Positions 21,323 to 60,229 of a DNA stretch of 64,000 nt are shown here, one piece after another; positions within the stretch are counted from its first letter, which is position 1; each line of letters opens with the position of its first letter. The translations under genes were made by a program, and so were the position numbers. Under the pieces are notes generated by a model. The model was not told the origin of the DNA and searched no databases. It was given only the letters and a program-made list of their open reading frames with translations. Source of the stretch: Podarcis muralis (lineage: Eukaryota); NCBI RefSeq assembly GCF_964188315.1, contig NC_135670.1, positions 4,774,001 through 4,838,000 on the forward strand, given 5' to 3'.

Positions 21323-24300
21323 TCACATCTTAGGTCTTGCCTGAAAGACCAGCTGGCCATAGGAAATTTCATCCTGTTATAAAATTTGGAGGAGAGGGCT
21401 GTTAGTTGCTTGATGGCTTAAACTCAATGCCTTTTTGGCCATGTGAGAAGCATCCAGACCTCTCTGTCTCCGTTTCTCATTTTTCCAGTTTTAAATACAG
21501 TTCTCCACATCTAGGGAAGCTTTTAATGTCTGATATTTTATCACTTTATTAATATTATTATCATTAATTCTTTGGGGAGCTGCCCAGAGTGGCTGGGGAA
21601 ACCCAGCCAGCTGGGTGGGGTATAAATAATAAATCATCATCATCATCATCATCATTTCTGCAGCGATTTTGTGATTTTTTTATTTAAAAAAGCTTCATGA
21701 AAACCATACAACATTTTAGTGCAGATTTCATTTTGTATGCACTTCTGACTCATGAACAGATTTTCTCAAGTAATTATCCCTAATGGGATGCATTTTTGTA
21801 CATTATTTTCATAAATATATTCCTGTTTGTGAACATTGTTTGGATGGAGAACAACATTGCAAAATTTTGGGAAGTGCAAACTTCAAAGGTTGGCTGTGTT
21901 TCAGTTCTCATAGTGTTTCAGGAAGTGCAAATTTGATAGTTCTGAATTTAATGCAAACGGAATCAAATTTATTCCCCATTCCTATCACCCATCTATATTT
22001 TTAAAGGAGCCCTTACCTGTATTTCCTCTGAAGGAGGAGGTCCAGAGATCTTGGTGTGACACCCTTCGGGAGCAAAACAGTTTTACTATATTTGATTATT
22101 AAACAAATTTAACACACAAGCAGACATATGTGCTATCATTAACAACACATGACACACTTTTAAAAAAGGCTTTAAGATGTGTTTTTTTCTTGAATATTGT
22201 CGAGGGCTGCCAAAAAGTGGTTGGACCACCCTGATACACACACACAAATTTAATATTTGATTTTTACAGTATTTTCTTATGCACATTTTGCACTGTTTTA
22301 TACAACTGATTTTTGTTGATTAAGTGATATATATATATCTTGCTAATTAAAACATAAAACAAATAGTGCGAAGCCCCGGCTGCCTTGTGCACTACAGGCA
22401 GCAAAATTTCATTTTGCCCTCTGTGTAAAGAGACACTGGCATAGGGCATATTGTCATGGTTCTTTCCCGGGGTGCAGCTCCTCATATTACCTGGGCCAAT
22501 TCGGATCCAAATAAAACTCAGAAAGATGAGCAGTGATGCCAACACTCCAACGACAGCAAACGACACTCTGTAGACTTGGCAGTTCCCGTTATCATCTGTG
22601 GAAGAAGCTTTCAAAAAAGGAGAGAAAGAATATATTAAAAAAAAACCCAGCTTTGCTTACTCAGGAATTTCTGCTGTCGACAGAAGACAACACTGCATCA
22701 CTCACATGCATTGAACATGGCGGTCCTTTTCACGCTGGTGCTGGAGGAGTTGAACCTGACTTCGCAGGTGATATTTCCCCCACCGCTGTGTAATTCCATG
22801 GGGAAGCGAAGGAGACTGACGAAGGTTAAGGACCCACTGTTGTTTTTTCCTAAAAGGGTCCAGGCCTCATGAGGGAGACCTCCCGGGACGTCCCAGGAAA
22901 CCTGGACTAAGTTGCACGCTCCATGGACCACGCAAGCGAGCTGGTTTTCCAGCTGGGAAGACGGGCCTTGCTTAGAGGGTTTTAAAAGCATCACCCGGGT
23001 GCTCGGGGTATAACTGTCTGATGAGAAAAAAATAGGGAGAGGAGAGATTCATCATTGCATAATTTCATCCACCTCTATCCTGCCCTCTCTTATTTGCCCT
23101 TTCTAAAAACTAAAAAGCACAAACTCTCCTCCTACATCCTCTTCTGAACCTTTACTGGCTCTACAATATCCCTTTTCAGGTCAGGTAACTGGAACTGTAC
23201 ACAGTATCCCAATTGTGGCTTGCATGAGATATTTGTGTCATGCAATTATGATGCCGGCGGTTTTAATTTCGATCCATTCCTAAGCATCCCTAGGGTGGAT
23301 CTGCCTTATGGAAAGCTGCATCTAGGTCAGGAGGTTTGGGGTGAGGCCCCCTTAAATGGTATGGGGAAGGGCTGGGTTAATGTTTTGCTCCTGCAAAGGC
23401 CAGAGCAGTTTCTTAGAGAGAATCGTAGGAAACAGCCGTGCAGTTGAGGGATGTGAAAGACCCTCCATGAGATTCTTGGTGCCAATGGAGGCCGAACGAG
23501 GCTGGTTTCTGATATTTTGTGACAGGATGAAAGGCTACTAAGAGTGGGGCTAGAATTCAACAACAGCCTTGCCTGCAACATATGAGATGATCTTGAGAAC
23601 GGATGCTAATTTAACTGCACCACTCAGTGGTTCTAGTGCAAATCTCAGACCTAATCTCTTACCTCCAACAACCAGTAGGCATAATCCTTTGTTGACATTA
23701 TAATTTGTTGTGACACAGAAATATATGCCAGAATCCGACCTCTGGACATTCAAGATCTCCAGCACTGAGTTTTGACTGTAAGCTTCAGCTCTGCAGACAA
23801 ATCTGTCCCCGGTTTTTCCATCGTTACAACGTTTAACTAAAACTGGCAATCTGCTTTCTCTTCTTTTATACCAACTGAATGATAATCCGCCATCCTCAAT
23901 TTTTTCGGCAGAAGTGCACGGAATCTGTGCCGACTCTCCAATACCCACAAACTGGAACCTCTGCGTTGGATACAGGAACGAAAGGTGGGCTGGAAGCACT
24001 GTGGAGGGGAAACGCCACAAGGACCGTTAACGGCTGCAGTTTTGCACCCCAGTCTTTTCCCGTAAAAAGATAAAACACCGCTCAAGGATCTCTACATTGC
24101 CCTGTGACTGAAACATTAGAAATCAGATGCACATTTAAGGAAAAAGTGGGAAATGTTTTACCAAAACTACAGAAAGTTTCAGAGTCTATAAAAAATATTC
24201 AACAAAATCGCTTTCTCAGGCTTTAAGATTTGGGCAAAAGCAGCAGAATAAATCTTACCTGCGGAGGACAAAACAAGGTATGTGGTCAACAACATTGCTG

Positions 24301-24337
24301 AAAGTAGCGGCAGCAGCCAGAAGTCCAGAGCCCACAT
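21323..24337 (-). CDS. Gene A: non-rearranging VJ-C1 IgSF receptor, type-1 chain, ITIM-bearing (PRARP-like), 309 aa
   Basis: Leader 24337-24259 (MWALDFWLLPLLSAMLLTTYLVLSSA); V 23998-23663 (QIPC..FSWYK..DSGIYFC); C1 23017-22706 (LACVV..VSW..ITCEV); CP/TM 22595-22491 (YDDNGNCQVYRVSFAVVGVLASLLIFLSFIWIR); tail exons 22063-22017 and 21373-21323 (DEISYGQLVFQARPKM*). Total 930 nt, all phases compatible. Confidence 0.88.
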
Positions 24338-24420
24338 CAAATGTGCAGCAGCTTCAGTGGAAAAGGTTTAATGTGACACCAGCTTCTTGCCAGAGAACCA
24401 CCTTCATGTGGGCGTTGCAG
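24338..24420 (-). promoter_or_regulatory. Conserved proximal promoter/5' UTR of type-1 gene A
   Basis: CGCCCACA..GGTGG..GCAAGAAGC..CACTGAAGCTGCTGCACAT upstream of the ATG, shared with B and C. Confidence 0.55.
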
Positions 24421-24479
24421 TGGGGTGATGGGGACCATTGAGAAAGGTCAGCAGGGCTTGTGATAAAGTAAAGGCATTC

Positions 24480-24960
24480 TGGGAATTGATCTAACGAGCT
24501 AAAAAAGATGTTTAGATATACCTTCCCCAAAAAGCCAGAAGCATTTTTGCTGGGTTTGATGGGAGAGGAAATTGCTAAGACTATTTCTGTACGCCATGAC
24601 AGCAGCAAGAACTTTATTAGCTCAAAAGTGGAAAGTGCAGGAGTTGCCAACGACTGAGGAGCGGCAGACAAAGATGATGGACTATGCAGAATTAGCCAAG
24701 CTGACCAGTAGAATCCGGAACCAGAACGACCAAAAGTTTCAAAGAGGCTGGAGTAAATTTATTGGGTATATGAATAATTGTTGCAAAAATGTGAAGACAC
24801 TAGCGGGATTGAAATAAATCCTGCAACGAAACCTAAAACATTTTATAACTTTCTAGACCAAAGAGACAGAGTTGACTATAAGGAGATAAAGGTCAGAAAT
24901 AGAGGTTTTAAAGTGCAATATAAAGACCTGAAAACAAAAAAACAGTTGAAGGAGTGGAAG
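24480..24960 (+). mobile_element. L1-like LINE 3' fragment
   Basis: LFLYAMTAARTLLAQKWK..KMMDYAELAKLT. Confidence 0.7.
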
Positions 24961-25385
24961 AAGAAGAAGAAGAAGAGTTTGGATTTGATATCCCGCCTTT
25001 CACTCCCTTTAAGGAGTCTCAAAGCGGCTAACATTCTCCTTTCCCTTCCTCCCCCACAACAAACACTCTGTGAGGTGAGTGGGGCTTAGAGACTTCAGAG
25101 AAGTGTGACTGCCCCAAGGTCACCCAGCAGCTGCATCTGGAGGAGCGGAGACGCGAACCCGGTTCCCCAGATTACGAGTCTACGAGGGAAGTCATGAGCT
25201 CGACAGAGCAAAGAGTATTTTTATTTGCTATTGTAATGTTGGGAATAGTGTGTTAAGAAAGAAATTAATAAAAATTATATGTAAAAAAATAAATGAGAAA
25301 GGTCAACAAGGAGGAATCACTCCCAGAAAGCCCCTAAACAGCACTCCCGGCTTTATTCAATGCCCTGTTATTGCCTAAATGTGTA

Positions 25386-25746
25386 GGTAAAGGTAAAGGT
25401 AAAGGGACCCCTGACCATTAGGTCCAGTCATGACCGACTATGGGGTTGTGGCACTCATCTCGCTTTACTGGCCGAGGGAGCTGGCGTACAGCTTCTGGGT
25501 CATGTGGCCAGCAGGACTAAGCTGCTTCTGGCAAACCAGAGCAGCACACGGAAACGCCGTTTACCTTCCTGCTGGAGCAGTACCTATTTATCTACTTGCA
25601 CTTTGACGAGCTTTCAAACTGCTAGGTTGACAGGAGCTGGGACCGAGCAACGGGAGCTCACCCCGTTGTGGGGATTCGAACCACCGACCTTCTGATCAGC
25701 AAGTCTTAGGCTCTGTGGTTTAACCCACAGCACCACCCGCGTCCCT
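25386..25746 (+). mobile_element. Sauria SINE
   Basis: Full-length, diverged copy. Confidence 0.88.
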
Positions 25747-26489
25747 GCCTAAATGTATATGCAATGGCAAAATGTCTGCATAAATGAATGAATATTGACA
25801 CATCTTACCCTTTAAAAAAATGGAGACGCTGCCTTCCGGTCCAGGCTGAAACTCTGGCAGCAGATTTCCATCCTGATCTATAGGAAGCACAGGAGCTTGC
25901 TTTCTGCTAAGCCAGGCCTATCTAACACAGTGCTGTCTACACTGACTGGCAGCATCTCTCCAGGGTTTCAGGCACAGGACATTACTTTGGCCTGGAGGAT
26001 GCCAAAGATTGAACCCAAAACTTTTCTCTTGCAAATCATGTCTATGGCATTTATTTCCCTTTTGGCAGAAGTGAATGAAATCTGCAGGCAGAGTAGCCCA
26101 TTCCTGCGTTGAGAAAACTTTTCAAACTACAGTCAAATAGATCCAGGAGTTTTTGTGCTTGGTACCTGTAAAAGTAACATTATTTTTGTTATTATTATTA
26201 TTTCTTTGGTGCCAGTAGCTGCAAGTTTAACCAGGTCAGTTAAATCCTAGTCTGGGCTCTACAATAGGCCAAGAGCTTTATCTTTTGGCTAGGCTTCCCT
26301 GGAGATACCCAGGGGCACATTTATCCTCAGTACCCCTCTCCATAGATCAAGAAAGACAGGAGGAAATCAAACGAAAAGCTTGTTCTTTGAGAGCTATATT
26401 TAGGCTGTAGCTGGCTGGCCACCTCTGCAGCTTCAACAGACCACAGACACACAAAATCCCTGGGTGTGGATCTCAGAGGTAACTCTGGT

Positions 26490-26625
26490 TAAGAAAAAAG
26501 CACCCAGCACCCTCCTGACTCAATCTTTCTGCTCTTGTTGGTTTTGACACCCCTGAGCCTATTTTCTTCATCTGCAAAATTGATAAAAACAGGAAATTTT
26601 TGCAGAAGTTTGTGTGGCTTTGGCT
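26490..26625. repeat. Locus-specific block duplicated at 62740-62870
   Basis: Shared CCTGA(C/G)TCAATCTTTCTG..GGTTTTGACACCCC..AAAAACAGGAA..AAGTTTGTGTGGCTTTGGC in direct orientation. Confidence 0.8.
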
Positions 26626-28779
26626 TCGATGCTGTTTGTAACGGTAATGAAATGTTGGTAGTCTGACTGGGCAGGAAGGACCCCTCGTAGCTCAAAATGG
26701 CCTGCTAAGTCAACCTGAATTGTTGAATTGTTTTCCCTGCTCCGCCAGGGGGGAAAACATTCTGCCTCTCTCATAAACAATACCTAGGAGAGAGAAACGG
26801 GGGAGAAACTTGACCCAGTTTGCATTTAAAGTGGAACCGAACTAATTTGCACTTCCCAAAGCAATCTGCAAACTGCACCTAGCCATCGTCTGAAATTTGC
26901 ATTTGCACTCTAATTTTCCAATGCGGTTCTCTTCTCATGTAACGTGTGCAAAATAAAAAAAAATTAACATACATGTATTAGGGTAACCTGCGCAGGAAAC
27001 TAATTCTGAAATAGTGTTCCAGGGTCGAGGGGGAGTTAATTCATATTTATACTTAATATTAATTTTGCAAAGCAGTTTCTTATGGAGAGAAATTAATATT
27101 CATTTGGTTTGAAAATTAAAAAGATAAAAAAAAGCATAAAAATGAGGCTATTACTGAAAGGTTTGTTTTATTGATTGATTTCATAAAACTTCTGTGCCTG
27201 TTTGATTGTAAAGAACCTCAAAGCAGTTTACAAAAAGAATAACAATAAAAAAGTGTGAGTAAAAACAGCTAAAAACATTACTTGAAACATTCAAAAAGAT
27301 TAAAATCAGACTGAAACACACATTCCCTGTTTAGGGAAGTTTTTAATGTTTAATGCTGTACAGTATTGTGTTTTTAATATTTGGTTGGGAGCCGCCGAGA
27401 GTGGCTGGGGAAACCCAGCCAGATGGGTGGGGTATAAATAATAAATCATCAACATCATTCTACAAATTCAGAATGAGTATTCCGTAGCAATCACATTGCA
27501 GTATATTGCTTTGTAAAAAATAATTATGTGCATATTAGGCAAAATTGCATTCTAACCTATGTATATTAGGATAAATTTGCACCAAAATGCTGATTTATTT
27601 TCAAGACTCTCAATCTGATGTGGAAATTTAGAGAAGTGGGAACTGAAGATTGAGAAAGGGATAAACTGAGAGAAACACAAATTAAAGGAGTCTCCCTTCC
27701 TCAATGGCACATAAAACTGGGCTATTGGAATATGCTGCAGGCTGCAGCCCTTACAAAAATTTCCCTGGGTGTCCATCATTCAGAATGATTTCTCTTTTTT
27801 ACAATCAATTTTATTAAAGGTTTTCCAACATGTTATACAATTAAAAACAAACTGATCAAGAAAGAAATAATAGAGAACAATGCATAAAAAAAGGAAAGAA
27901 GGAAAAAGAGAAAAATAAGAAAATAAAATAGTAAAAACCACCATAATAGTAATGATCCTAATAAAACACATTTTATATTTTTTACAATTTTATTAAAGGT
28001 TTCCCAACATGTTATACAATAAGAAGCAAACTAATCTAGAAAGAAATAATAGAGAACAGGTTAGCAAAGGGTATTAAATTCAGGAATCTCTTTTTCTACT
28101 TCTCCACCTTCCTTCTGTAGACTCCATGTTTCTTCTTAGCTGCTGTGACCTATTCAGCTTGGAACAGAAAACAGAAAGGTCAAAAGGCAGATTCCAGAGG
28201 GATGCTTTGTTAGGGACGAAGGACGAGAAATCACCTGGAGAGGTTTAGAGTGGTTCTTGAGATAATAATAATAATTTAATAATTTATTATTTATAACCCC
28301 CCCCCCCCATGTTGGGGGACCCGGACCGCTTTGGACATACAGTGGTACCTTGATTGTCAAACTTAATCCATTCTGGGAGTCCGTTCGACTCCTGAAACCG
28401 TTCGAAAACCAAGGTGCAGCTTCCTGCACTCAACCGGAAGCTGCGTTGGACGTTCCAAAAAACGTTCGCAAACCGGAACACTCACTTCCGGGTTTGCGGC
28501 GTTCGGGAGCTGATTTGTTTGACAACTAAGCCATTCGGGAACCAAGGTACCGCTGTACTTCAGATCCAAGTTGTTTCTTTGTTTGCAACTCCCCACTCCT
28601 GCAAAAAACACACCCCCAAACTCCATTTTAGCCTGACTGATGTCAAATCTCTGACCGGGACAGAGAGTTGGAAGTTCCTGCAACAATAGGAGGGGGGGGG
28701 GGTCAGATCTAAGACCCTATTTGCTAATGCTGCACATCTGGGACCAGAGTATTGCAACCTTAGCTGTCTTCCCCCCTCC

Positions 28780-29147
28780 TCTCCCATGTCAGCCAGTGAA
28801 GAGAAAGAAACGGCCTTGGTCCAGTACATCTGAAGGAGCATCTCCACCCCCATCGTTCTACCCGGACACTGAGGTCCAGCTCCGAGGACCTTCTGGCGGT
28901 TCCCTCACTGCGAGAAGCCAAGTTACAGGGAACCAGGCAGAGGGCCTTCTCAGTAGTGGCGCCCACCCTGTGGAACACCCTCCCACCAGATGTCAAAGAG
29001 AACAACAACTACCAGGCTTTTAGAAGACATCTGAAGGCTGCCCTGTTTTGGGAAGCTTTTAATGTTTGATGTATTATAGTATTTTAATATTCTTTTGGAA
29101 GCCGCCCAGAGTGGCTGGGGAAGCCCAGCCAGATGGGCGGGGTTTAA

Positions 29148-29185
<38 letters not shown>
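28780..29185 (+). mobile_element. L2/CR1-clade LINE 3' fragment with (TTA)n tail
   Basis: Homologous to 2040-2480 in reverse orientation. Confidence 0.8.
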
Positions 29186-29186
<1 letters not shown>

Positions 29187-29239
29187 TAACCCACTGAATT
29201 CTATGGGGTTCACCTGCCCTTCTCCCCACCAGCAGTTTC

Positions 29240-32200
29240 CTATAGGGTCTCCCTCTTTGATCCTTGGTTTGCTGGTGATTCTGTGTTCCCAGGGAGGCAT
29301 AGAAAGGCTTCGATGGGCTGGGTTCAATGCAGCCCTGCTTTTTCTTTTCCTTTTCCTTTTTAAAATTAATTTTTAATTTTTTTTACCAACAACCAAAACA
29401 CAAACAGTGAAAGCCCAACAGGCGGCTGATACATTGGGTATACATAATCAATAATAACATATTCAAATCAACCATATGTTCAATTCTATATATATTAACA
29501 CTCCTCCCTCCACAAGGTTTATTTAACTTTTAACATTTTAATTGCCCCAAATTGTTCAAACCTGCCCAAATAATCCAATAGCGTCTCAAACCAATCCTCC
29601 TTCTCACTGACCTTATACCCTTTCATTTTGTGTATCTTCACAGTTAGATATTCTAAAATTATAATATTTTTCGGTTTCCCCCTCCATTGGTTCAACCCTA
29701 GCTCTTCTGCATTTTCCCAATTACTCGCTATCCTGCTTGCAAACACATAATTACCTCTGCCCAAACGCTTTCTGAAGCAGAGGACCAGCGGTGGGATCCA
29801 CAGGATGATGACCAAGCAGGGAACTCTATAATACAATGTAAGGAAGCAGGTTCCTGCTAAAAGAAGAACACAGAGAAACAGCAGTGTTAAGCCGAGTAAC
29901 CCATGGACCCAGGTTCTCACTGAGACTGGTAGGGCGGAAGGCAGGGAGGCCACCAGCAGGTGGCGCCAGAGCCAGTGGCAATCAGAGCCAACTAATCCCA
30001 GCTTTGCCTCCACCTTCCTCTTCCCTCCTGAGTTCCATAATGGCAACCCCGAGTCCACTTATAGTCCCTGCCACAATTTGCAGTGAGGGAACACCTAGAA
30101 GGGCTCTCTTTGTGGCCCTGACTCTGGAACAGTCTCCCCCATAGACTTCTGCCTGTCTCGCACCTTGCTGGTCTTCAGATGTCAGCGTGAACGACATTTC
30201 TAACACATCCAAACTTGCACAGTTTGAGATTATGAGATGTTTAGCCATCGGTAGCAATGTGAATCAGTGGTTTTCTTTTTTTAACGATTAGTCTGAATAT
30301 GCTTTTTATTTTATTTTCAGTATTTGGTTTTTAGTATATTGTTGTGACAATGCCACCCCCCCCCCCCCAGCTATTCTGGAGGAAGGGTGATTTGTAAGTA
30401 ACATAAATAAAATAAAGATATAGGTTGGTGTCTCTTGGCAGCTTGAGATGGAGGGTAGCGCTGGGGTCTTAGGGGGATTGTGGATTACTTAATTTCCTTT
30501 AAAATGGTGTGTGTGTGTGTAAGCCATCTGTCTTGTATTTGGGGACCCCTTCACAGACCGCAGAGGCGCCTAGACTTGTGCCTCACATTCTTGCCCTGAC
30601 GGCACTGCTAGAAGCTCTACGCTATCTTCAAATTCTAACCATAAAAGGGTGTGCTTGTGTAGCACAACATGCCCTGGAAAATGGTCTGGAATAGCTATAT
30701 TACAGTGGTACCTCAGGTTAAGAACTTAATTCGTTCCGGAGGTCAGTTCCTAACCTGAAACTGTTCTTAACCTGAGGTACCACTTTAGCTAATGGGGTCT
30801 TGCGCCACTGCTGCTCGGCTACTGCGCAATTTCTGTTCTCATCCTGAAGCAAAGTTCTTAACCTGAAGCACTACTTCTGGGTTAGGGGAGTCTGTAACCT
30901 GAAGCATCTGTAACCTGAAGCTTATGTAACTCGAGGTACCACTGTATATGCAAACTGAGCATGAAGCGGAGGGGCTGGCAACATTAACACCCCAAAAGAT
31001 ATTGCTGCTCCGTTATTCACCCTTTGGATCCAATGCAGAGCAGGTAAGTCTTTGTATCGCCAGCTTCCAGCCTGATTTCTACTCAGCTTTCCAAACCACT
31101 CTCTTTCTTGCAATGGTTCACCTATCTAGCAGCCAGGTGAGGGGATGGGAAGGCACATTCACTCATTCTATGGCACAGAGCAAATTATTTGGTTACGCTA
31201 ATCGTGGTGTGAGCCACAACCACTGCCCAGACAAAGGGACTGGTTTGAAAAACTTGCTCTCATCACTTCTATGACCCAAAGTGCAGGAACCCAAGAATTG
31301 GAAGGGACTCATGGCATCATGCAGTCTGACCCCACAAACTCACAACATCACTCTACCTGCCGACACTGTGTTCAAAGGGACCACTGCACTGATATTTCTT
31401 TTCTCCTGGTCTGAACAGGAATAAGCCACCCCTTGGCTCCATCTCTCTTGAGGAATCAGTTTCAGACTCCAAATGGTGAAGTCTCCTTCCCCATCGATCA
31501 TGTAACCATCCTTCTGGTCCTCAGAGGTTTCCCCACCAATATCCCAGGAGAAAGTATCCTCATCAGGGTTTGCGTCAGTCAGGAGGCAGAGGAGGGGGAC
31601 GTGGTGGGAGAGCTCCGTGTCTTCTGCAGCGGAAGGAGCAAGGAGGGAAAGTCTTGGCCCAGAAGTTCCTAGGAGAGAAGGAGAATCGCATGAAATGGCT
31701 CATCAGATCTTTAATTAATCCCTCTCATAGGTTTCACAAGGGTGACATGGCTCCTCAACAAACTAGACCCAATAAACAGCCATCCCAATGACCGTTGCAG
31801 TAGTTAGAGTGTTGGACTAGGGCCTGGAAGAGACCTGGGTTCAAATCCCCATTCAGGAAGCTCGCTTTGGGCTGGTCTCAGCCTAGCCTCCCTCACAGGT
31901 TGCTGTGGGGATCAGTGAGGAGCAGCTGAACCAAGTGCAATACCTGGAGCTCCTTGGAGAAAAAAGGGTAAATGCAATAATAAATAAATAAAACAAATGC
32001 TACAGACCCTAAATTAAATCTAAGCCATAGTTGCTTAAACCTAGCCCTCCCAATATCTACTAGTAGTATAGTCGTACCTTGGTTTTCGAACAGCTTTGTT
32101 CTCGAATGTTTTGGCTCCTGAATGCCGCAAACCCAGAAGTGACTGTTCCGGTTTTCAAACATTCTTCGGAACCCGAATGTCTGACGGGTGTTCCGCGGCT

Positions 32201-35346: not shown

Positions 35347-35392
<46 letters not shown>

Positions 35393-37544: not shown

Positions 37545-37855
37545 GATCAGGCTGAATTCAAATTAAAGGCCAGGCGGAATAGCTCTGTCTTACAGGCCTG
37601 ATGAAAGGAGGTTAAATCCTGAAGGGCCCTAGTCTCATGGGACAGAGCATTCCACCAGGTCGGGGCCATCACTGAGAAGGCCCTGGCCCTGGTGGAGGAC
37701 AGTCTGACTTCCTTAGGGCCTGGGACCTCTAAACTATGGTTATTCATGGATCTTAAGGTCCTCTGTGGGCCAGACCAGGAGAGGCGGTTCCATAGGTACA
37801 AGGGCCCTAAGCCACAAAGGGCTTTAAAGGTCAAGACCAGCACCTTGAACCTGAC
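37545..37855 (-). mobile_element. L2/CR1-clade LINE fragment
   Basis: LVLTFKAL.GLGP.YL..RARAFSV.APTWWNAL. Confidence 0.75.
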
Positions 37856-37863
37856 CCTATACT

Positions 37864-38043
37864 CAGTGGCGTAGCGTGGGTTGTCAGCACCCGGGGCAAG
37901 GCAAGTAATTTGCGCCCCCTAACCCGTGGATTTGCGCCCCCTAACCCGTGGATTTGCGCCCCCTAACCTGTGGATTTGCCCTAACCCCAGATGTTGCGCC
38001 CGGTGCGGCCGGCCCCCCCTGCACCCCCCACGCTACGCCACTG
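37864..38043. mobile_element. hAT MITE (CAGTGGCGTAGC TIR)
   Basis: TIRs CAGTGGCGTAGCGTGGG / CCCACGCTACGCCACTG; perfect 8-bp TSD CCTATACT. Confidence 0.9.
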
Positions 38044-38467
38044 CCTATACTCCACCAGGAACTTTGCAAGTTCTGGGACTCAGAGAATGCCATGCAGGAT
38101 GTGCAGTTGCCCAGGAATCAATAGGTGGGAAACCAGATCCCTTCTCAACTCATTGTGAAAATATGGCGAACAGTCACTAACAAACTGGCGTCCCCAAACA
38201 GCTGACAGGCAATCTTCCCTCCAGACTAGGCACCCAAATTCTGAAACCATCAGGGTGACTTGACTACTGAACAAACTTGAAGCAGAACACACACACACAC
38301 ACACACACACACATATCTGGAAAGCTGCATAGAAGCAAGAGATTTGGAAAACCTAAAACTGTGCTGGAAAAAGGTCAGTGATCTGTTGACCTGCAAAGGA
38401 TTCAAAGGTGAATTAGTGAGACAGCCCCCACCACTGACTTTTCTCTGTGCTGCCCATTAAGATATTT

Positions 38468-38549: not shown

Positions 38550-38578
38550 ATGTGGGCTTTGGGCTTCCGGCTGCTGCA

Positions 38579-47305: not shown

Positions 47306-47344
<39 letters not shown>

Positions 47345-50300: not shown

Positions 50301-52772
50301 CCCCTCGTGAGCCGGGTTGTGGCGCAGTAATAAACCCCAGAGTCGTTCCTTTGCACATCGCTGATCCTCAGACTGTGCCCTTGGCTTGAGTACCTGCCCT
50401 GTACTTGTTTTGCGTATGGAGAACTCTCGTAAATCCTGTGCAGATTTTTGCCTTCATCCTCCTTGTACCAGGAAACCATCAACGAGAAAGTTTCTTTTAC
50501 AACGGGGCAGCGGATGTCAGCCATGTCTCCAGGAGATACCGAGATCAGGGCCAGATCCTGCGGTATTTCAGAATTTCCCTCTAACTGAGCAGCTATAAAA
50601 TGGAAACAAAGGGACGTGTGATAAGCTGGTAGGAAAATGAGTGAAGGGGAAAGATTCAGACATGTCGGACTGTGAATTTATCCACAGTCCTTCTTGGAAC
50701 CAGCACTGATATTATTAATTAATAATTATTAATTGAAATATACATTTTTTTAAAAAACCAGAAGCATTTTATTTGGTATTATAGGTCAGGACATTAATAG
50801 GCAAGATGTTAAATTGTTTTTATATGCAACAACTGTGGCAAGAGTATTGTTAGCCCAGAAATGGAAACAAGAAGAAATTCCGCCGAAAGAAGAATGGCAG
50901 GCGAAATTAATGGACTATGCAGAACTGGACAAAAGGACAGGAAGGATTCGAAACCTGCGGGACCAGAGATTTACAGAAGATTGGAACAAGTATATGTATT
51001 ATTTGAAGAGCAACTGTAATCAACAAATTACGCTAGTAGGACTACAAGAAGTTTTGTAAGGAGAAATATACAAAGTGTTACAAAGTAGAAAAAGATAGAG
51101 ATATTGGTTATGAGTTTGAAATGTAATAGGGGAAATAAGAAATGCATACTGAGAGATTAGACTGGAAAATTTTCAGACAGGATTGATGGAAGTCAAAAAT
51201 TTGAATAAGATGTAAAAGTATGTTTTATTACTGTTGAAAATGATATGTTTTTTAAAAAACTAATAAAAAATTATATATATTAAAAAAATATTATTAATTT
51301 ACACCACAAATTTTGGACCGTGGGTCTTTGGCGACGGTCAGTTTCATGCATTTTAGCGGCAGGCATGCTTATTCCATAACCATGACTTGAGGCATCCAAA
51401 CAAAGCTTTCCTCAATGCCCTAGCTAAGGTGGAATATTTGTAGCACACTTTTCTTTTTTTTTGCTTTAAAAATGGGAATGTAAGAACACGAATATTCAGA
51501 TTTGAATAAGCTATAAAAAACTAAGCTATAAATGCAGTGGCATTTTACAAGACGGACTTATACTCTTTATTTTTTAAAAGACCTCCTATGGTTTCATCCC
51601 ATCTCATTGGGCGCATTTTCTTGCACCTGTGTAAATGAAGAAAACGAGAAAGAAAGCAGCCAGTGCTGTTTTGTTTTATTTTCATTCGTTTTAACTTAAT
51701 TTTTACTGGAGACCTTTTTGCTCCAACCTTATGTGAGAAAGAATGATGAAAACTTACCTCTCTGAGGTGGGGGGAGGTTTAAGGCACTGCTACCGAAGCT
51801 TACAAAACGTTTTCACCGTATAGCTTTACCAAACAAAAGCAGTAATTCATATTCCTCTCACAAGTACACGTACATGTATATAAAGTCTAGCTGAATTTCC
51901 TCAGAACAGAGTTCTAAAAATGAGTGCCTTCGAACACTGCATTTTAGACACTGTTCATCAGTCAGCTTTTCTTGCTTCAACTGCAAAATCTCAGACCAAA
52001 AGGATCCAACATCAGCAACGGCAACCAGGCGAGATATTTACAATAATATCTAAGGGTTGTAATTTCCATGTTCACTGATTTTGATGGACCTAAATTGGCT
52101 GCATCCAGTGTCCTGAACAGGCCTACTCTGAGTAAGACTGATGGTGGATACCCAGAAATAAATCTCACTGTGTTCAGTGGGGCTTTCTGCCAAGCAAGTG
52201 TGTTTAGGGTTTTCAGCCCCAAAACCAAAACCAATATAAAGATACAATCTGCTGAGATCAAGTCTTTTAGCTTTCAAAGATGCTTACTGCAGAGTGACAA
52301 ATGGAGGAACAAAAAATATGCATTCAATCCTGATTGGTTTACATTTATTTATTTTATGAACTGTCGCCTGGAGGAACCTAGACAAAAGACCCTCAACTCA
52401 GATATCTTTTAGGCGTAGTTATTTGACTTAACATGATGCAAAAATTGTTTTCTCCCTTGCAGACATCCTGACTGTATTTTGCTTTATAGCTGATGAGCAA
52501 TACCCATTATTTGTTCAGCTAGGTAGCCGTGCTGGTCTGACGCAGTGGAAATAAACAAAGAAATTAATAAATTGTCCAGTAGCTCCTTAGAGACCAGCTA
52601 AGTTTGTTCTGGGTATAAGCTTTCGTGTGCTACTGGACAATTTTTTAATTTCTCCATTATTCGTTGCTTGCATTGTTTCATGTTATTCTTATTAAGAATC
52701 ATATTATAGATAATAAAGATACATACTCGGCAGATAAAATAGAATGAGCCCAAGGAAGTGTGAGAGAGACAT
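45492..52772 (-). CDS. Gene E: non-rearranging VJ-C1 IgSF receptor, type-2 chain, ITSM-like tail, 310 aa
   Basis: Leader 52772-52727 (MSLSHFLGLILFYLP); V 50592-50281 (DIRC..VSWYK..DSGVYYCATTRLTRGTRLVIS); C1 49191-48892; CP/TM 46985-46884 (DDCVSILYFGVPCVVSVILLISLSALFFRK); tail exons 46729-46680 and 45614-45492 (TEYAELRCNKW...QRAT*). Total 933 nt, in phase. Confidence 0.86.
45954..46245 (+). mobile_element. Sauria SINE (variant subfamily)
   Basis: AAAGGTAAAGGTACCCCTGCCCGTACGGGCCAG head. Confidence 0.85.
49263..49680 (-). mobile_element. Solo LTR with a CCAAT-containing 40-bp tandem repeat
   Basis: Minus strand TGTTATG...ATTTCA; 5-bp TSD CAGGC; TATA-like at 49353-49360; AATAAA at 49300-49305; about 4.5 copies of GGACCAATCAGACTGCTGCATTCTGAATCCTATTGTTCTA at 49469-49660. 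Confidence 0.85.
50721..51288 (+). mobile_element. L1-like 3' fragment in gene E intron 1
   Basis: 11-bp TSD TATTATTAATT (50710-50720 and 51289-51299); the empty site is present in gene D. Confidence 0.85.
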
Positions 52773-53595
52773 CTTCTGGTCCTCTTCAGGTGCTGAACTT
52801 GAAAACAGACCTGCTGGGCAAGGGCTTTCTCCTCCAGCCTAGTGCTGCGTGTGACGTACGTCTCTCAATTTCCTGCCAATTTCCGTGGGTTAGAAAGTCA
52901 AAGGTTGGGAAACGAAAGCCGCCTCTGACTTGCACGGGGTCCCCCACACAACATTCACAGGGGCAGACTTCAGCACCTTTGCTTTGAAGCCACAGAAGCA
53001 GGGAGATTTTGGAAAAAAAGAGGAGAACTTATTTCACGTGCAACTTTTGGGGGATTGAGAGAAATGCAGGAAATATGCTTTCTCTATGCAGGAAGATGAG
53101 CTCAGGATAGAGTACCACATAATGGTTCAAATGATGCATAAATTTTAGGGAAGAAAGTTGGGGGAGAGGTCACCATTTTCCACAAAGCATAGGAATACCA
53201 TTTACCGTATTTTTTGTTCTATAAGACTCACTTTTCCCCTCCTAAAAAGTAAGGGGAAATGTGTGTGCGTCTTATGGAGCGAATGCAGGCTGTGCAGCTA
53301 TCCCAGAAGCCAGAACAGCAAGAGGGATTGCTGCTTTCGCTGCACAGTGAACCTTTTGCTGTTCTGGCTTCTGGGATTCAGAATATTTTTTTCTTGTTTT
53401 CCTCCTCCAAAAACTAGGTGCATCTTATGGTCTGGTGCGTCTTATAGGGCGGAACATACGGTAGTGATTTTGATCTGCACAGGTGTATTTAAAGCATAAA
53501 TTTCCCAAGCTGGTTTACCTACACAAACATACACCAACCTGTAATAAATGAAGGGGTAAACAAGCCAAATTTTCTGAGAGGAAAAATATTTGTTT

Positions 53596-53923
53596 TTGTT
53601 GTTTAGTCGTTTAGTCAAATAGAAGGGGAAGAAATGGAGGCAGTGAGAGATTTTTACTTTCTTGGGCTCCACGATCACTGCAGATGGTGACAGCAGTCAC
53701 GAAATTAAAAGACACCTGCTTCTTGGGAGAAAAGCAATGACAAACCTAGACAGCATCTTAAAAAGTAGAGACATCACCTTGCCAACAAAGGTCCGTATAG
53801 TTAAAGCTCTGGTTTTCCCAGTAGTGATGTATGGAAGTGAGAGCTGGGCCATGAAGAAGGCGGATTGCCGAAGAATTGATGCTTTTGAATTATGGTGCTG
53901 GAGGAGACTCTTGAGAGTCCCAT
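53596..53923. mobile_element. Bov-B fragment with inverted 3' tip
   Basis: TTGTTGTTTAGTCGTTTAGTC (3' end, minus) joined to a plus-strand RT segment (MTNLDSILKSRDITLPTKV). Confidence 0.75.
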
Positions 53924-54905
53924 GTGATGAAATATAAAACAGATTTAAACCAATGCATGCGGCAGTTCATAACATCCATCAAAAGTCATCTGATTAATCC
54001 TTAACACACCAGTAATGAATGAACAAATTGGTACCCAGAAATCCCTAATTGTGCTTCAAGGCGGCCAGAAGCTGTTCCTGACAGTCAATTCCTCATCATG
54101 TCTAATGTCAGGGCTGGGCTTAGATGGCACAGAAGACCTGCTCCTTCAGATGCCTGCCTATTTTTGCCTCACCAGGCTCCTTCAGGAGGAAAATATCATC
54201 TTCATCTTCATTATCATCCAAGTTGAAACTTGTAGCACGATAAGGTACAGACCACTGTATTTTAATATTTTGTTGGAAGCCGCCCAGAGTGGCTGGGGAA
54301 ACCCAGCCAGATGGGCAGGGTATAAATAATAAATTATATTCTATGCTATAAGAATTCCCAAGACAGAAGCAGAAATAAGCAAAGGCCTACCTGCAATTTG
54401 GCCTCGTTTTATTTCACGTACAAATCAAAGCAGCGCACTTCAAGGGTACAGACCTCATGATAAATATTCAGTGACGAGATTTAATTTCTGTGTCAACAAT
54501 GCTGGCAAGAACCTTTTGATTTCCCTTTGGCTATCTCCATACGATACCTGGAGAGAGAAAAACAGAAACAGAAAAACATGGTCATGAATAGCAGAATCGT
54601 AGATTTCTAGAGTTGGGATCCCAGTGGTCATCTAGTCCAATCCCTGCAATGCAGGAATCACAGCGAAGCTAATGAGGTTAATGTCATGTTATAATACTCC
54701 CAAAGAACTGTTCCACATTTCCTTTCCCATTCCTTATTTGCATTCGTCCTTTAAAAAACGGGGTTCTATGATCTGTGCACCTAAATGATAAAATAATAAT
54801 TTAAAAACTTCCATAGCCTTGCTAGTGCTTAGAGGTCTCCAATACTGAGAGGGACATTTGTGGGCTGCCCAGGACTGATTCTGCCCCAGTCCGTTTCCTC
54901 GATGG

Positions 54906-54983
54906 CACGCCCACAAGGAGGTGGGTCCTCTGCAAGAAGCTGGCATCAAGTTAGACCTTCTCACTGTAGCTGCTGCACATCCG
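54906..54983 (+). promoter_or_regulatory. Conserved proximal promoter/5' UTR of type-1 gene C
   Basis: Same block as in A and B. Confidence 0.55.
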
Positions 54984-57900
54984 ATGTGGGTTTTGAGCTT
55001 CTGGCAGCTGCATCTTTCAACAATGCTGTGGGCTGCGTACATCGTTCTGGCCTCCACAGGTAACATTTATTCTGCTCCTTCTACCAGACTCTTAACACTT
55101 AAAGCATGAGAAAGTCAGTGGGTTGTATGTTTATGCACTCAGAGAGTTCCTCCACACTCAGCTCAGGCAAAATACTTTCTCCTTCAGCATGTGTCTTATT
55201 TCCAGGGCTTCAGTTGCAGGACAGTGTTGTTGTTTAGTCGTTTAGTCGTGTCCGACTCTTCTTGACCCCCTGGACCAGAGCACGCCAGGCACTCCTGTCT
55301 TCCACTGCCTCCCGCAGTTTGGTCAAACTCATGTTGGTAGCTTCAAGAACACTGTCCCACCATCTCGTCCTCTGTCGTCTCCTTCTCCTTGTGCCCTCCA
55401 TCTTTCCCAACATCAGGGTCTTTTCCAGGGAGTCTTCTCTTCTCATGAGGTGGCCAAAGTCTTGGAGCCTCAGCTTCAGGATCTGTCCTTCCAGTGAGCA
55501 CTCAGGGCTGATTTCCTTCAGAATGGAGAGGTTTGATCTTCTTGCAGTCCATGGGATTCTCCTCCAGCAGGACAGTGTAGGGATTCTCAAACAGTGTGAT
55601 GTCTCCTTCAACGTCTTCTTGCAAGAAAAGCCAGAGCGACAAACGGCAACCATAAACGGTCTTTCTCCTCCACAGTGTTTCCAGCACACTTGCAGATCCT
55701 GCATCCGACCCAGCGGTTCCTGTTTGTGGATATTGGGGAGACGGCACAGATCTCGTGCACTTCTGTAGAAGATATAGAAGATCGGGCATTATCATTCATC
55801 TGGTACAAAAGAAGAGAACATGGAATGCCGATTTTAATCAAAAGTTGCAATGATAGAAAACCCGGAGGCAGATTTGCTTGCAAAGTTAATCCTAACCGTC
55901 GAAACGCCATACTGGAGATCCTTCATGTGCAGAGCTCTGATTCTGGCCAATATTTCTGTGCCCAAGAATCTTCTCGTGGCTTGCATTTCAGCACTGCAAC
56001 ATCTTCACTGATTGTTGGAGGTAAGAGATCAGGGCTGACGGAGCTTTGCTGCTGTGTGTTAGAGGCACCAGGGTCTGAATTCAAGCAGAGTCAAATAAGG
56101 ACCAGTTCTCAGGATCATCCCATTCACTGCAGGCAAGATTCTTGCTGAATTTTAGCCACTGCATTCATGTAAGGAGGTGGCATGGCCCCCTGCCAGACTG
56201 CAACCACATTTGGGTGGATCGGTAGCTTATTGAGTTCAGTAAGTTGATATTGCCCTCCAGAGCAAGTTTTGAAATGTTCTTCCTCTCAAGGAAACTTTCC
56301 CCATGTTGCCTTGTGGGCTAAGAGGTTCCTAGGCATGCGCCCCTGTGCATTGTAAAACATTCCAGGCTGCGGGGTTTCTGATGCGCATTCCCTATGAACC
56401 AACACCTGAGCCTTGTCTCCAAATGAGCACTGCATGGGAATTGTGTTTTTGGTGACAGTGATCTGTCTTTTAAGGACATTGATCTGGAGTTAAAGGTAAA
56501 GGGACCCCTGACCATTAGGTCCAGTCGTGGTCGACTCTGGGGTTGCGGCGCTCATCTCGCTTTACTGGCCGAGGGAGCCAGCGTACAGCTTCCGGGTCAT
56601 GTGGCCAGCAGGACTAAGCCGCTTCTAGCGAACCAGAGCAGAGCATGGAAACGCCGTTTACCTTCCCACTGGAGCAGTACCTTTTTATCTACAGTGGTAC
56701 CTCAGGTTACATACGCTTCAGGTTACAGACTCCACTAACCCAGAAATAGTGCTTCAGGTTAAGAACTTTGCTTCAGGATGAGAAGAGAAATCGTGCTCTG
56801 GCGGCGCAGCAGCAGCAGGAGGCCCCATTAGCTAAAGTGCTGCTTCAGGTTAAGAACAGTTTCAGGTTAAGAACGGACCTCCGGAACGAATTTAGTACTT
56901 AACCCGAGGTACCACTGTACTTGCACTTTGAGGTGCTTTTGAACTGCTAGGTTGGCAGGAGCAGGGACCGAGCAACGGGAGCTCGCCCCGTTGCGGGGAT
57001 TCGAACCGCCGACCTTCTGATCGGCAAGTCCTAGGCTCTGTGGTTTAACCCACAGCGCCACCCGCGTCCCATGATCTGGAGTTACTAAGCATCTTTTCTG
57101 AGAAGTCTTGCACACACTACCCTTGAAACCCCCACCATTTCCTGGCATAAAAGCCCAACACCAGGATGAAATTCTGAAGCCTTTGTTATCTATAGGTGGT
57201 CCTCCTTGCTGTACTCTCTTTGGAGATTGTTCTTACTGTGCCCCTTGCTTTGTTTTCCTCACCAGACAGTTATACTCCGAGCACCCGGGTGATGCTTTTG
57301 CAGCCCTCTAACCAAGACCCAGATTCTCGGTTCAAGAACCAACTTGTTTGCGTGGTCCATGGCGTGTCCAACTTAGTCCAGATGTCCTGGGACGTCCCAG
57401 GAGGTCTCCAGCAAGAGGACCAGACCCTTTTGGTGAAAAACAGCAGTGGGTCGTTATCCTTTGTCAGTGTCCTTCACCTCCCCATGGAATTACAAAACAC
57501 TGTGGGAAACATCACCTGTGAAGTCAAGTTCAACTCTTCCAGCACCAGCGTGAAGAAAACTGCTGTGTTCAACGCAGGTGAGTGAATCTTTTCTTCCTGC
57601 CATAAGAATATCAGGCGGCCTTTTTCACCAACGTCGCTTATGGAAGGTCTTTTTTCCATCGTGAATTTTAACCAACCCCCCCCCCCATTGATAATACCAC
57701 TGACTGCCCTTTTCTGCTTTTAGCGATGTCCAGAGTTTTACAAAACTTGCTCAATTACTCAAAGGCTCTTGAATATTCATGCCCCAAAACGCTTGCTTTT
57801 TCCTGACTGGTTAGTAATACACAGGGCTAGAGTCTGTGTGATTTGTGCTTGTATTTCTGTTGCTTTTTTATTTCGCATATGTTGCATTTTATTGTGTGAC

Positions 57901-60229
57901 AATCTGAATTCAAATTGTACGTGTCAAATTGTACATGCCCATAACCACCTGAAGGAAGCTCATGCTCCAGCGGCAGCAGGAGGCCCCATTAGCTAAAGTG
58001 GTGCTTCAGGTTAAGAACAGTTTCAGGTTAAGAACGGACCTCCAGAACGAATTCAGTTCTTAACCCGAGGTACCACTGTATTCTGGTTGGCCTCTGTTAT
58101 TTTCTCCTACTGATAGGGAACCTATACAGACTCTGGAATACCCCATAAGGGAAAAGGAACAGGTTTCTTTCCTTACAGCATCTCCTCCCCCTTTCGGAGG
58201 CAGAATCCCTCTGAATAACACCAGTTGATCACAAGTAGGGCAAGTGCTGTTGTGCTCGGGTTCTGCTTTCGGACTTCCATCGGGGATCTGGTTAGCCACT
58301 TTGAGAAGAGGAGGCTGGACTAAGTGGACCTGATTCAGCTCCGAGACTATCCTTAGGTTCTTACGGAGCCTCCAGGTCCAGGGGCAGTCTATCTGGATTT
58401 CAAGGTTCTTAGGGCCATTTGGCCACTGTGGGAACAGAATGATGGACTAGATCAGGCCAGGCTCTCCTTATGTCCTTCTTTAGTCTTTTGCCAAAAACAG
58501 CATTTCCTGAGTAAGCAAATCTTTTCCCCCTCTCTCTCTTCTTTCTAAAGCTTTGTTGACAGAAGGTGATGCAAAGTGCCTAACCCACAAAGTGTCCTTG
58601 GCTGTCGTAGCAGGATTGGCATCACTGCTCATCTCCCTGAGTTTCCTTTGGGTCCGATTTGGCCTTCCCTGGCTAGGTAATATGGGGGAACGCACCCCGG
58701 GCCGGGGGGGGGGGATCACATGAACAATATCCCCTATTCAAGTAGGTGGCCGTGTTGGTCTGCCGTAGTCAAAATAAATTAAAACAATTCTTTAAAAAGA
58801 TCGTTGAAAAGACTCCTTCAAAACCTAAAAACGCTCTGAAAAGAATCAAGTCTTCAAAAAAGTTATAGGATCTAAGGAAGTCTTTAAAAGAATCCTTCTA
58901 AAAGAATTTAAAAATTATAAAGTTGCACCCTAGAGACCAACTGAGTTGTTTTCAATATAAGCCTTTGTTTGCATGCACACTTCTTCAGATACTCTGAAAA
59001 CATATCTCCTGGGTCAGTTTCTCCTTATGCAGAGTGCAAAAATGAATTTCTCTGCTTGAAGTGGACAAGGCAGCCTCTGCTCCCCCTGATTTATTTTATA
59101 TTTTAGTTAGCAAGATTTGTGCATGTTGCTTAATGAACAAAAAAGGGTTTTACACAAACGTTAAAAACAAGCAGACATACAAACTGAACAAAAAAAATAG
59201 ACAAAATCAGCTGTTTTCCTCATCACAAAACATTGGACCAAGTCCTACTCAGAGTAGTCCCATTGAAATAAACAAACCTGATTTTAAAAATGCATATATC
59301 AGTGAAAGAAAACGTACAGAGATGCATTATGATCGAGGAGATTGTTTGCAAAGAAGTGTATATTAGTAAAAAGTGCATCCCCGAAAGTGTTTATTAGGAG
59401 AAATTTGTACTAAAATACTGGTGAGTCTTCATGTGTTTTTTTAAAATATAATTTAAAAAAATGCAAATTGCTGTAGAAGTGTGGAGAACTGACTTTAATG
59501 TTGGGAAAATGAGGGACTTAGGAGAGCGGAAATGTACAGATTTGCTCATCAGGCTCAAATGTGGAATGCAGAAGGATGTGGGATTGGTGCATTTTCTATT
59601 ATTTATGGATTGGTGCATTTTCTATGTGTCTTATTATTCATTTTTTGCTCCTCAAGGTTCCCACACCAAGATCTCCGAGCCCCCATCTTCAGGGATAACA
59701 GAGGTAGGAACTCTTTTAAATATATATACATGTATAGGTTTTGAGATGCTCTAGGTTTTGAGGCGTACACAGTCTCAGGTGTACAATCTGGGCACACAAC
59801 TGATAAGAATGAGGGATAAAATCAGCTCAGTTTGCATGCTGCCAAATCCACCTGTTTTGAATCCTTTGATATTTTGCACTTATCCGAATTTTGCATTGCA
59901 CTCCTCTATCCAAGCAACAGTCACAAAAATGAATATATTAGGAAGAGGTGTGCCTGAAAATGAATGAATCTGTGAACGTAATGCACAGAAATACACTATA
60001 TACTTGCAAAAAACATGTGTCTTGTCCCCATGAGGTCTGGCTGCTTCTCACATGGGATATAAAGGTGTTGAATTTAAGCCGTCAATCAACTAACATCCCT
60101 CTCCTCCAAATTTCAAAACAGGATGGGATTTGCTACGCCCAACTGGACTTTCAAGCAAAGACCCAAGATGAGAGGAAGAGAAGACTAGGAGCGCAAGGGA
60201 AGAAATCCAAAACTTTGAAGGACCTTTGA
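54984..60229 (+). CDS. Gene C: non-rearranging VJ-C1 IgSF receptor, type-1 chain, ITIM-bearing, 333 aa
   Basis: Leader 54984-55059; V 55676-56020; C1 57266-57577; CP/TM 58563-58676 (EGDAKCLTHKVSLAVVAGLASLLISLSFLWVR); tail exons 59657-59703 and 60122-60229 (DGICYAQLDFQAK...KDL*). Total 1002 nt, same exon plan as A. Confidence 0.88.
55228..55566 (-). mobile_element. 5'-truncated Bov-B in gene C intron 1
   Basis: 12-bp TSD GCAGGACAGTGT; empty site at 39070-39081 in gene B. Confidence 0.92.
56492..57070 (+). mobile_element. Sauria SINE interrupted by a Tigger-like MITE (56692-56917)
   Basis: The SINE resumes exactly after the TA duplication. Confidence 0.9.

Follow-up and report, generated by a model that had tools for sequence, protein, structure and literature searches.

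Facing pairs of germline-joined VJ-C1 receptor genes beside APH1A in Podarcis muralis, probable members of the PRARP family

The chicken is said to possess a pair of non-rearranging genes, termed PRARP, in which the exon of the variable (V) domain is joined to a J-like segment and whose products carry an immunoreceptor tyrosine-based inhibitory motif (ITIM). In transfected cells, these products reportedly occur as monomers and as disulfide-linked homo- or heterodimers, and V-C1 orthologues are said to exist in bony fish, amphibians, reptiles and other birds, with degenerate forms in birds. UrIg is reportedly a secreted antibody-like molecule of elasmobranchs, and NKp30 consists of a single V domain; neither of the two is known to be organized as a two-gene facing unit. 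In PMC10751288, UrIg and NKp30 are presented as other non-rearranging VJ genes, which are linked to the major histocompatibility complex (MHC) or its paralogues. PRARP was named by Fu et al. 2019 (J Immunol 202:1992, pmid 30770416), a reference cited in PMC10751288 and PMC11599192; both articles mention PRARP in passing among the immunoglobulin superfamily (IgSF) genes with joined V and J. The present analysis concerns five spliced IgSF genes at positions 21323-60229 of a 64-kb window of the Podarcis muralis genome (the whole stretch of contig NC_135670.1 that was analysed, to which all positions refer), which were rebuilt exon by exon from the sequence.

The reading considered probable is that this cluster encodes five non-rearranging type I membrane proteins that resemble chains of immunoglobulins (Ig) or T cell receptors (TCR), belong to two lineages, form a conserved unit linked to the gene APH1A and act as heterodimers. 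Such genes bear on the open question of a two-chain V-J-C1 receptor before the RAG transposon split the V exon, and non-rearranging VJ-C1 genes are the main living evidence on this pre-RAG receptor. One 40-kb stretch holds both chain types, their facing layout, putatively inhibitory as well as tail-less charged versions, and a fixed address at APH1A/CA14/CIART.

Five genes of two types

The exons were placed by reading splice sites, with annotated lacertid proteins as a guide, and all five genes follow a common plan, in which a leader exon is followed by a V exon, a C exon and an exon encoding a stalk cysteine and the transmembrane segment. The V exons are 312-345 nt long, include a J-like G strand and end directly at a GT donor, and the C exons measure 300-312 nt. 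All acceptors of the modelled exons are AG and all donors GT, the Ig exons are uniformly of phase 1-1, and the leader is of phase 1. Genes A, B and C are referred to as type 1 and genes D and E as type 2. The minus strand carries gene A (24337-21323, 313 codons), gene D (35779 to ~29240) and gene E (52772-45492, 310 codons), and the plus strand gene B (38579-42334, 267 codons) and gene C (54984-60229, 337 codons); the reading frames of A, B, C and E run uninterrupted from ATG to stop, and the rebuilt stop codons of A (21323) and C (60229) are the outer limits of the reported cluster. Protein identity amounts to 61-75% among the type-1 genes, 43% between D and E, and 25-31% between the types. 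Genes D and B are arranged head to head, with their ATG codons (35779 and 38579) 2.8 kb apart, as are E and C (52772 and 54984, 2.2 kb); gene A has no type-2 partner facing it. The flanking marker gene APH1A (approximately 15351-1845, minus strand) was recognized by Pfam Aph-1 matches on the open reading frames (ORFs) 7938-8186 and 5674-5961 and by six exon matches to a crane Aph-1 gene across 15351-1845. The rebuilt models and identities agree with the original prediction of germline-joined VJ-C1 chains of two types in head-to-head units adjoining APH1A, including its exon plan (leader, V with J-like strand, C1, Cys plus transmembrane segment) in all five genes and the facing of D-B and E-C across 2.2-2.8 kb. 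Its description of five intact genes holds for A, B, C and E, whereas gene D is whole only through the transmembrane exon and has a tail exon without splice sites.

Pfam V-set was detected on all five V exons (in gene A with 1.5e-11), and the C exons of B, C and D exceed the C1-set threshold (27.1 bits in D); the C exon of gene A falls just under it, with 20.2 bits against a threshold of 21. No Pfam domain was found on the C exon of gene E, which is 46% identical to that of D. A single C1 exon lies between the V and transmembrane exons in each gene, and no further Ig exon was found anywhere in the window. In all five chains and both types, a membrane-proximal stalk Cys is located 2-5 residues above the transmembrane segment. 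A search for recombination signal sequences (RSS) gave zero heptamer-12/23-nonamer matches in the whole 64-kb window, and V and J lie in one contiguous exon, as had been claimed. Since V and J are joined in the germline without an RSS, the receptor would be invariant. The J-like motif is good in genes D (FLSGVRLIV) and E (LTRGTRLVI) and in most relatives, but degenerate in Podarcis A, B and C, where Gly-x-Gly has been lost; the J-like strand of the original prediction thus stands for type 2 and only in degenerate form for Podarcis type 1.

Ig light-chain and TCR-alpha V domains are the nearest solved sequences for the V domains of both types; the type-1 C domain is nearest to the constant domains of IgNAR, IgH and TCR-beta, and the type-2 C domain to IgG CH3. 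Structures predicted for a P. lilfordi protein (type 1) and a sea turtle protein (type 2), with a mean predicted local distance difference test score (pLDDT) of 75, consist of two beta-sandwich domains and one transmembrane helix. In the PDB, they match complete Ig light chains and TCR chains best, aligned over ~215 columns at 20-25% identity, and the matches that span both domains reach template modelling scores (TM-scores) by target of up to 0.65-0.73. Among reviewed proteins, nothing exceeded a TM-score of 0.35 except a bare kappa chain; for type 1, all scores were below 0.35 and fell on generic two-Ig receptors, and SIRP, butyrophilins and CD200R were weak generic matches only. The presence of SIRP among these weak matches, together with automatic database names such as 'immunoglobulin kappa light chain-like', 'immunoglobulin gamma-1 heavy chain-like', 'CD8 beta chain-like' and 'T cell receptor alpha chain', could be taken to mean that genes of another known family (SIRP, CD8, CD79, surrogate or conventional Ig light chains, TCR) have been misread. 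This is highly improbable. In contrast to rearranging Ig and TCR genes, the J strand lies inside a V exon that splices to C1 without an RSS, and the products have a transmembrane segment and ITIM tails or tails resembling the immunoreceptor tyrosine-based switch motif (ITSM). One C1 domain is present instead of the two of SIRP, and its presence separates the genes from CD8 and CD79. The low identity to the best Ig and TCR structures, the low scores against reviewed proteins and a conserved locus of their own adjoining APH1A also speak against this explanation.

Gene A comprises exons at 24337-24259 (leader), 23998-23663 (V), 23017-22706 (C1), 22607-22491 (stalk Cys and transmembrane segment), 22063-22017 and 21373-21323, and ends in ISYGQL before the stop codon, an ITIM. 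Gene C (54984-55059, 55676-56020, 57266-57577, 58551-58676, 59657-59703 and 60122-60229) likewise ends in an ITIM, ICYAQL, and is 92% identical to a full-length P. lilfordi model (P0003). The NCBI model of gene C (P0002) begins in an upstream exon (54105-54245), joins the V exon 50 nt too early and contains neither transmembrane segment nor tail; this annotated model looks unreliable. In the region of 55234-55704, intron 1 of gene C contains a retroelement ORF fragment, further copies of which are located at 17577-18032, 53662-53937 and 63595-63960. An intronic block of 140 nt just 3' of the transmembrane exon is 74% conserved between A (22310-22451) and C (59002-59143). In gene A, the transmembrane exon stays open through this block in a frame that includes NMPYASV, and the block might serve as an alternative tail or have a regulatory role.

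Gene B consists of exons at 38579-38615, 39188-39532, 40421-40729 and 42222-42334; its transmembrane segment holds an Asp, and the stop codon follows 11 residues past this segment. NCBI lists a partial Podarcis muralis model, P0006 (LOC144325803), whose V, C1 and transmembrane parts match gene B at 100% identity; the leader MPLTAYLFLFS is also present in P. lilfordi and Zootoca models. The leader region (38550-38615) derives from the ancestral type-1 leader exon by a shift of frame: the ORF in the ancestral frame, MWALGFRLLQCR, which corresponds by homology to the leaders of A and C (MWAL/MWVL), stops at 38586, and a new ATG at 38579 in a different frame yields MPLTAYLFLFS. The V exons of B and C share 92% of their DNA and 89% of their protein sequence, and the C1 exons 85% of their DNA. 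Alignment of 39070-39561 (B) with 55567-56049 (C) shows that the V exon and ~120 bp of upstream intron are 92% identical; the leaders and 3' ends are unrelated. This difference between V with its flanking intron and C1, together with the unrelated ends, suggests gene conversion or a mosaic origin of the B/C ectodomain.

Gene E is composed of exons at 52772-52727, 50592-50281 (V), 49191-48892 (C), 46985-46884 (stalk Cys and transmembrane segment), 46729-46680 and 45614-45492. It ends in TEYAEL followed by a stop codon, which is ITSM-like; its turtle orthologue carries the canonical TEYAAV, and a P. lilfordi model (P0008) is 90% identical to it. At the end of its C exon (48892-48940), two in-phase GT donors follow SPAG and TSPG. 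The P. lilfordi model takes the upstream one, whereas the NTVS shared with gene D favours the downstream one.

Relatives, age and conserved gene order

A profile of lacertid type-1 proteins was searched against 1.84 billion cluster representatives and retrieved 378 proteins at E<=0.001; at E<=1e-30, 25 cluster representatives remained. Relatives were identified from 30 clusters that were looked up. Type-1 relatives were found in a skink, a cordylid, a snake, turtles, alligator, a caecilian, Xenopus and other frogs, and a newt, and among birds in duck, swan, two cranes and ibis. Type-2 relatives come from sea turtles, newt, lungfish, coelacanth, catshark and skate. Together, they make up a conserved family annotated in non-mammals. 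In the databases, these proteins are called 'uncharacterized' or bear automatic names (kappa, lambda, gamma-1 or alpha-2 chain-like, CD8-beta-like, TCR-alpha), and the name PRARP is attached to none of the 30 clusters. A word-based search starting from a V-only isoform of turtle returned turtles only and no birds.

Type 1 and type 2 were resolved as distinct clades by maximum-likelihood analysis of 35 sequences, and the Shimodaira-Hasegawa-like approximate likelihood ratio test (SH-aLRT) supports either clade at 100%; A, B and C fall within squamate type 1, and D and E stand together beside turtle and newt type 2. The tree contains no Ig, TCR or SIRP references and leaves the place of the family relative to these unset. 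Judged from these sequences, the two chain lineages split before tetrapods, and both types appear to be old, with type 2 reaching cartilaginous fish.

The facing arrangement recurs in other reptiles and in birds. In Kemp's ridley turtle, a type-1 gene (minus) faces a type-2 gene (plus), which is followed by a second type-2 copy. In black swan (contig JABXOC020000126.1), three tandem units of a type-2 (minus) and a type-1 gene (plus) were found 1.4-1.6 kb apart. The repeated unit in swan is 8.4 kb long, contains the facing type-2/type-1 pair and is present in at least three tandem repeats. The order in grey crowned crane is type 1 (minus), type 2 (plus), type 1 (plus), Aph-1 (plus), a carbonic anhydrase gene (minus) and Ciart (plus), with ~0.65 kb from the first V exon to the facing start codon; the type-1 gene adjoining Aph-1 has no facing type-2 partner. 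Read on the opposite strand, the Podarcis window has the order C (minus), E (plus), B (minus), D (plus), A (plus), APH1A (plus). The pair B/D, gene A and APH1A therefore reproduce the crane order gene for gene, as a mirror image, and E/C is one extra unit. A type-1 gene also adjoins Aph-1 in the caecilian, and no neighbour gene was found within 10 kb at the catshark locus. Because the facing pair and the APH1A address are common to lizard and birds, both are, on this comparison of gene orders, older than the bird-lizard split. The term 'lizard-expanded' of the original prediction had to be given up: multiple copies also occur in turtles, alligator and swan, and compared with the crane layout only E/C is extra. 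The APH1A/CA14/CIART neighbourhood of the window corresponds to human 1q21, an MHC-paralogous region.

The divergent intergenic regions of Podarcis extend from 35780 to 38578 (D-B, 2.8 kb) and from 52773 to 54983 (E-C, 2.2 kb), and ~110 bp upstream of each ATG are conserved with the paralogue. The E-C region contains a retroelement ORF fragment (53662-53937) and a repeat resembling short interspersed nuclear elements (SINE-like; 54257-54337). Divergent promoters had been predicted for the pairs; this stands as a description, but a compact bidirectional promoter is not present, given distances of 2.2-2.8 kb and the repeats. Shared regulation of the paired genes is only plausible and is better backed by the compact crane pair. 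Within the D-B region, a GC-rich tandem repeat occupies 36629-37390; its unit measures ~90 bp, and both of its strands contain long spurious ORFs. Copies of the SINE-like repeat are located at 21514-21656, 27325-27458, 29017-29186, 44606-44736, 47308-47434 and 54257-54337, and one copy lies directly 3' of the dead tail exon of gene D.

Pairing, tails and signalling

In antibodies, VL Gln38 and VH Gln39 are hydrogen-bonded to each other across the interface of the light- and heavy-chain V domains (VL and VH). The corresponding position, the third residue after the invariant Trp (W+3), is R or K in 115 of the 122 type-1 members retrieved and E in 17 of 28 type-2 members, including those of lizard, turtle and newt. 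Opposite charges at this position would favour heterodimers over homodimers. Furthermore, type-1 and type-2 genes are kept together in lizard, turtle, swan and crane and were duplicated as a unit in swan and Podarcis, and the tail states match within each pair: E ends in TEYAEL and its partner C in ICYAQL, and both D and B are tail-less. The transmembrane charges of the latter pair lie at similar depth, with an Arg 7 residues past the stalk Cys in D and an Asp 9 residues past it in B. The kept and duplicated pairing, the stalk Cys, the R/E interface and the matched tails point towards a type-1/type-2 heterodimer.

Several observations weigh against this reading. At W+3, type 2 has Gln in lungfish and Arg in shark and skate, and the W+3 counts are dominated by related turtle sequences, which are not phylogenetically independent. 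A contig of the Chinese alligator carries three type-1 genes, two of which face each other, and no type 2 within 10 kb. The paired promoters of Podarcis are 2.2-2.8 kb apart with repeats in between, an Asp in the transmembrane segment of a receptor chain is unusual, and gene D may be in decay. The models retrieved from NCBI for this locus were partial or odd (P0002, P0006), and the retrieval yielded none for genes A and D. The alligator contig would fit the explanation that the genes belong to the same family and act as monomers or homodimers, the head-to-head arrangement being an inherited duplication pattern without a role in pairing. The same holds for two type-1 genes that stand without a facing type-2 partner, gene A and the one adjoining Aph-1 in crane, for the Arg in place of Glu at the interface in cartilaginous-fish type 2, and for the chicken study, in which monomers and homodimers were reportedly seen besides heterodimers. 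This explanation is nevertheless regarded as unlikely, since the type-1/type-2 unit has been kept from lizard to turtle, swan and crane and duplicated whole in two of them, the opposite charges at the VL38/VH39 position would disfavour homodimers of either chain, and tail loss was accompanied by a gain of transmembrane charge in both members of one pair.

The short Asp form of gene B is also found in models of P. lilfordi, P. raffonei and Zootoca and, being common to three other lacertid models, is maintained. Short or charged versions are present elsewhere in the family: the same LYFR motif is found, together with a short tail, in a lungfish type-2 member, and type-1 members of frogs combine short tails with an Arg in the transmembrane segment. 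Tail-less charged forms thus recur. The combination of 89% protein identity between the V domains of B and C with opposite ends is what is usually seen in paired receptors of inhibitory and activating function.

Gene D is open across four exons (258 codons) at 35779-35737 (leader), 33071-32751 (V), 31668-31357 (C1) and 29853-29755 (stalk Cys and a transmembrane segment with an Arg near its outer end). The sole run of N in the window, an assembly gap at 34680-35059, lies inside intron 1 of this gene, between leader and V exon; it touches no exon, so that no reading frame crosses it. The leader aligns with that of gene E, and the two agree in phase (1) and in the donor, AG|GTATGT. Between the gap and the V exon, intron 1 of D contains a conserved element (34359-34597, minus strand), which is 88% identical over ~240-245 nt to a paralogous element in intron 1 of E (51289-51531, minus strand) in the same orientation; the distance from element to leader is 1140 bp in D, including the estimated length of the gap, and 1196 bp in E. 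Since leader, element and V exon have the same order, orientation and rough spacing as in the paralogue E, this indirect evidence suggests that the leader at 35779 belongs to gene D. Leader candidates at 33181, on the near side of the gap, lie too near the V exon, and gene E offers no counterpart to them; they were dropped in favour of 35779.

Downstream of the transmembrane exon, a relic of the tail exon of gene D is found at 29291-29240 (minus strand), in which the AG acceptor has become TG and the donor CAG|GT has become TAG|GA, thereby placing an in-frame TAG stop exactly at the former donor. An alternative in-frame AG acceptor at 29282, nine bases inward, would add 13 codons. A scan for ITIM and ITSM motifs in all frames of 24400-29760 gave no credible exon, and blastn and tblastn searches with the last exon of E found nothing downstream of D. 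It could accordingly be argued that the cluster is partly non-functional, that D is a decaying copy and that a D/B 'activating pair' is an accident of tail loss. The dead splice sites and the stop codon at the old donor, the lack of a Tyr-motif exon in the searches downstream, a repeat immediately after the transmembrane exon, the fact that no annotated orthologue of D was retrieved, and a leader that is joined to the V exon only across the assembly gap would all fit such a history. On the other hand, the four exons of D are still open and bordered by canonical splice sites, the Trp and the two Ig cysteine pairs persist, and the C1-set match exceeds its threshold; to be intact at only 43% identity to E implies long independent evolution without a disabling change. 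The recurrence of tail-less charged forms in lungfish type 2 (LYFR) and frog type 1 and the conservation of the short form of B in three other lacertid models also argue against decay, which is considered rather improbable.

If the heterodimer reading is followed, the type-1 and type-2 chains of a unit would pair through their V and C1 domains. Pairing would be steered by Arg (type 1) and Glu (type 2) at the VL38/VH39 position and locked by the stalk cysteines, and the product would be an invariant heterodimer shaped like a TCR or an antigen-binding (Fab) fragment of an antibody. The E/C product might signal negatively through the ITSM-like motif on E and the ITIM on C. In D/B, the loss of both tails and the gain of Arg (D) and Asp (B) in the outer transmembrane segment would have produced an activating or adaptor-coupled counterpart; the Arg and the Asp might either neutralise each other or recruit an adaptor. 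A more far-reaching version is put forward tentatively and must be called doubtful: the two chain types might be obligate partners of an invariant alpha/beta-TCR-like heterodimer, steered by Arg/Glu, with inhibitory (ITSM and ITIM split between the chains) and activating or adaptor-coupled (Arg and Asp) forms, and represent a never-rearranged sister of the two-chain ancestor of TCR and B cell receptor (BCR). If this were true, the living sister of that ancestor would be a two-gene unit whose place beside APH1A was fixed before the bird-lizard split and one of whose chain lineages reaches to sharks. The Arg/Glu interface pair provides a concrete handle for testing heterodimer pairing.

Comparison with known systems

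The locus very likely contains members of the PRARP family, as judged by the features that PRARP is reported to have. A V exon and J-like strand joined in the germline without an RSS are present, as are two distinct genes side by side (two clades, facing as D/B and E/C) and a V-C1 ectodomain, which is reportedly typical of non-avian PRARP members and to which the fold matches spanning both domains correspond. An ITIM-type Tyr motif is found in the tails of A, C and E; B and D are tail-less and depart from PRARP in this respect. Moreover, bird relatives of both types occur as a facing pair beside APH1A, at a homologous locus, which would be expected if they were orthologues of the chicken pair. 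Apart from the tails of B and D, the PRARP-like character that had been predicted was therefore recovered in each feature compared: a non-rearranging VJ-joined IgSF pair, tails of ITIM type and a Cys through which dimers could be disulfide-linked. Differences from PRARP, as it is reported, concern the number of genes (two there, five in Podarcis), the tail-less pair with transmembrane Arg and Asp, the lost Gly-x-Gly of the J motif in Podarcis type 1 and the extension of type-2 relatives to shark and skate. The family has already been described, and the gain is one of depth, in that a known family is extended and no new receptor kind is added. Aspects that may go beyond the published description are the layout, the synteny with APH1A, the reach into cartilaginous fish, the Arg/Glu pair at the interface and the tail-less charged pair, a candidate activating form.

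With TCR alpha/beta and Ig light/heavy chains, the Podarcis genes share the V-J-C1 ectodomain, a Cys in the connecting peptide, the existence of two chain types and the nearest sequences and predicted fold; the charged transmembrane residues of the tail-less pair are a further resemblance. Unlike in these receptors, V and J are joined in the germline without an RSS, the chains themselves carry ITIM or ITSM-like motifs, and Arg/Glu replaces the interface glutamines. Paired receptors such as SIRP alpha/beta, KIR, LILR, CD300, NITR and CHIR resemble B and C in combining near-identical ectodomains with opposite signalling ends. They are, however, single chains or homodimers with a transmembrane Lys or Arg, whereas the receptor described here is presumably two-chained and its activating-like type-1 chain has an Asp. 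SIRP also differs in its V-C1-C1 structure from the single C1 domain found here. CD8 and CD79 have a single V-like domain on a stalk and no C1 domain, with an immunoreceptor tyrosine-based activation motif (ITAM) in CD79, in contrast to the C1 exon and the ITIM, ITSM-like or short tails of the Podarcis genes. Finally, the germline-joined VJ is shared with UrIg and NKp30, and the VJ-C1 structure with UrIg; together with the genes of the APH1A-linked cluster, both bear on the ancestry of antigen receptors before RAG.

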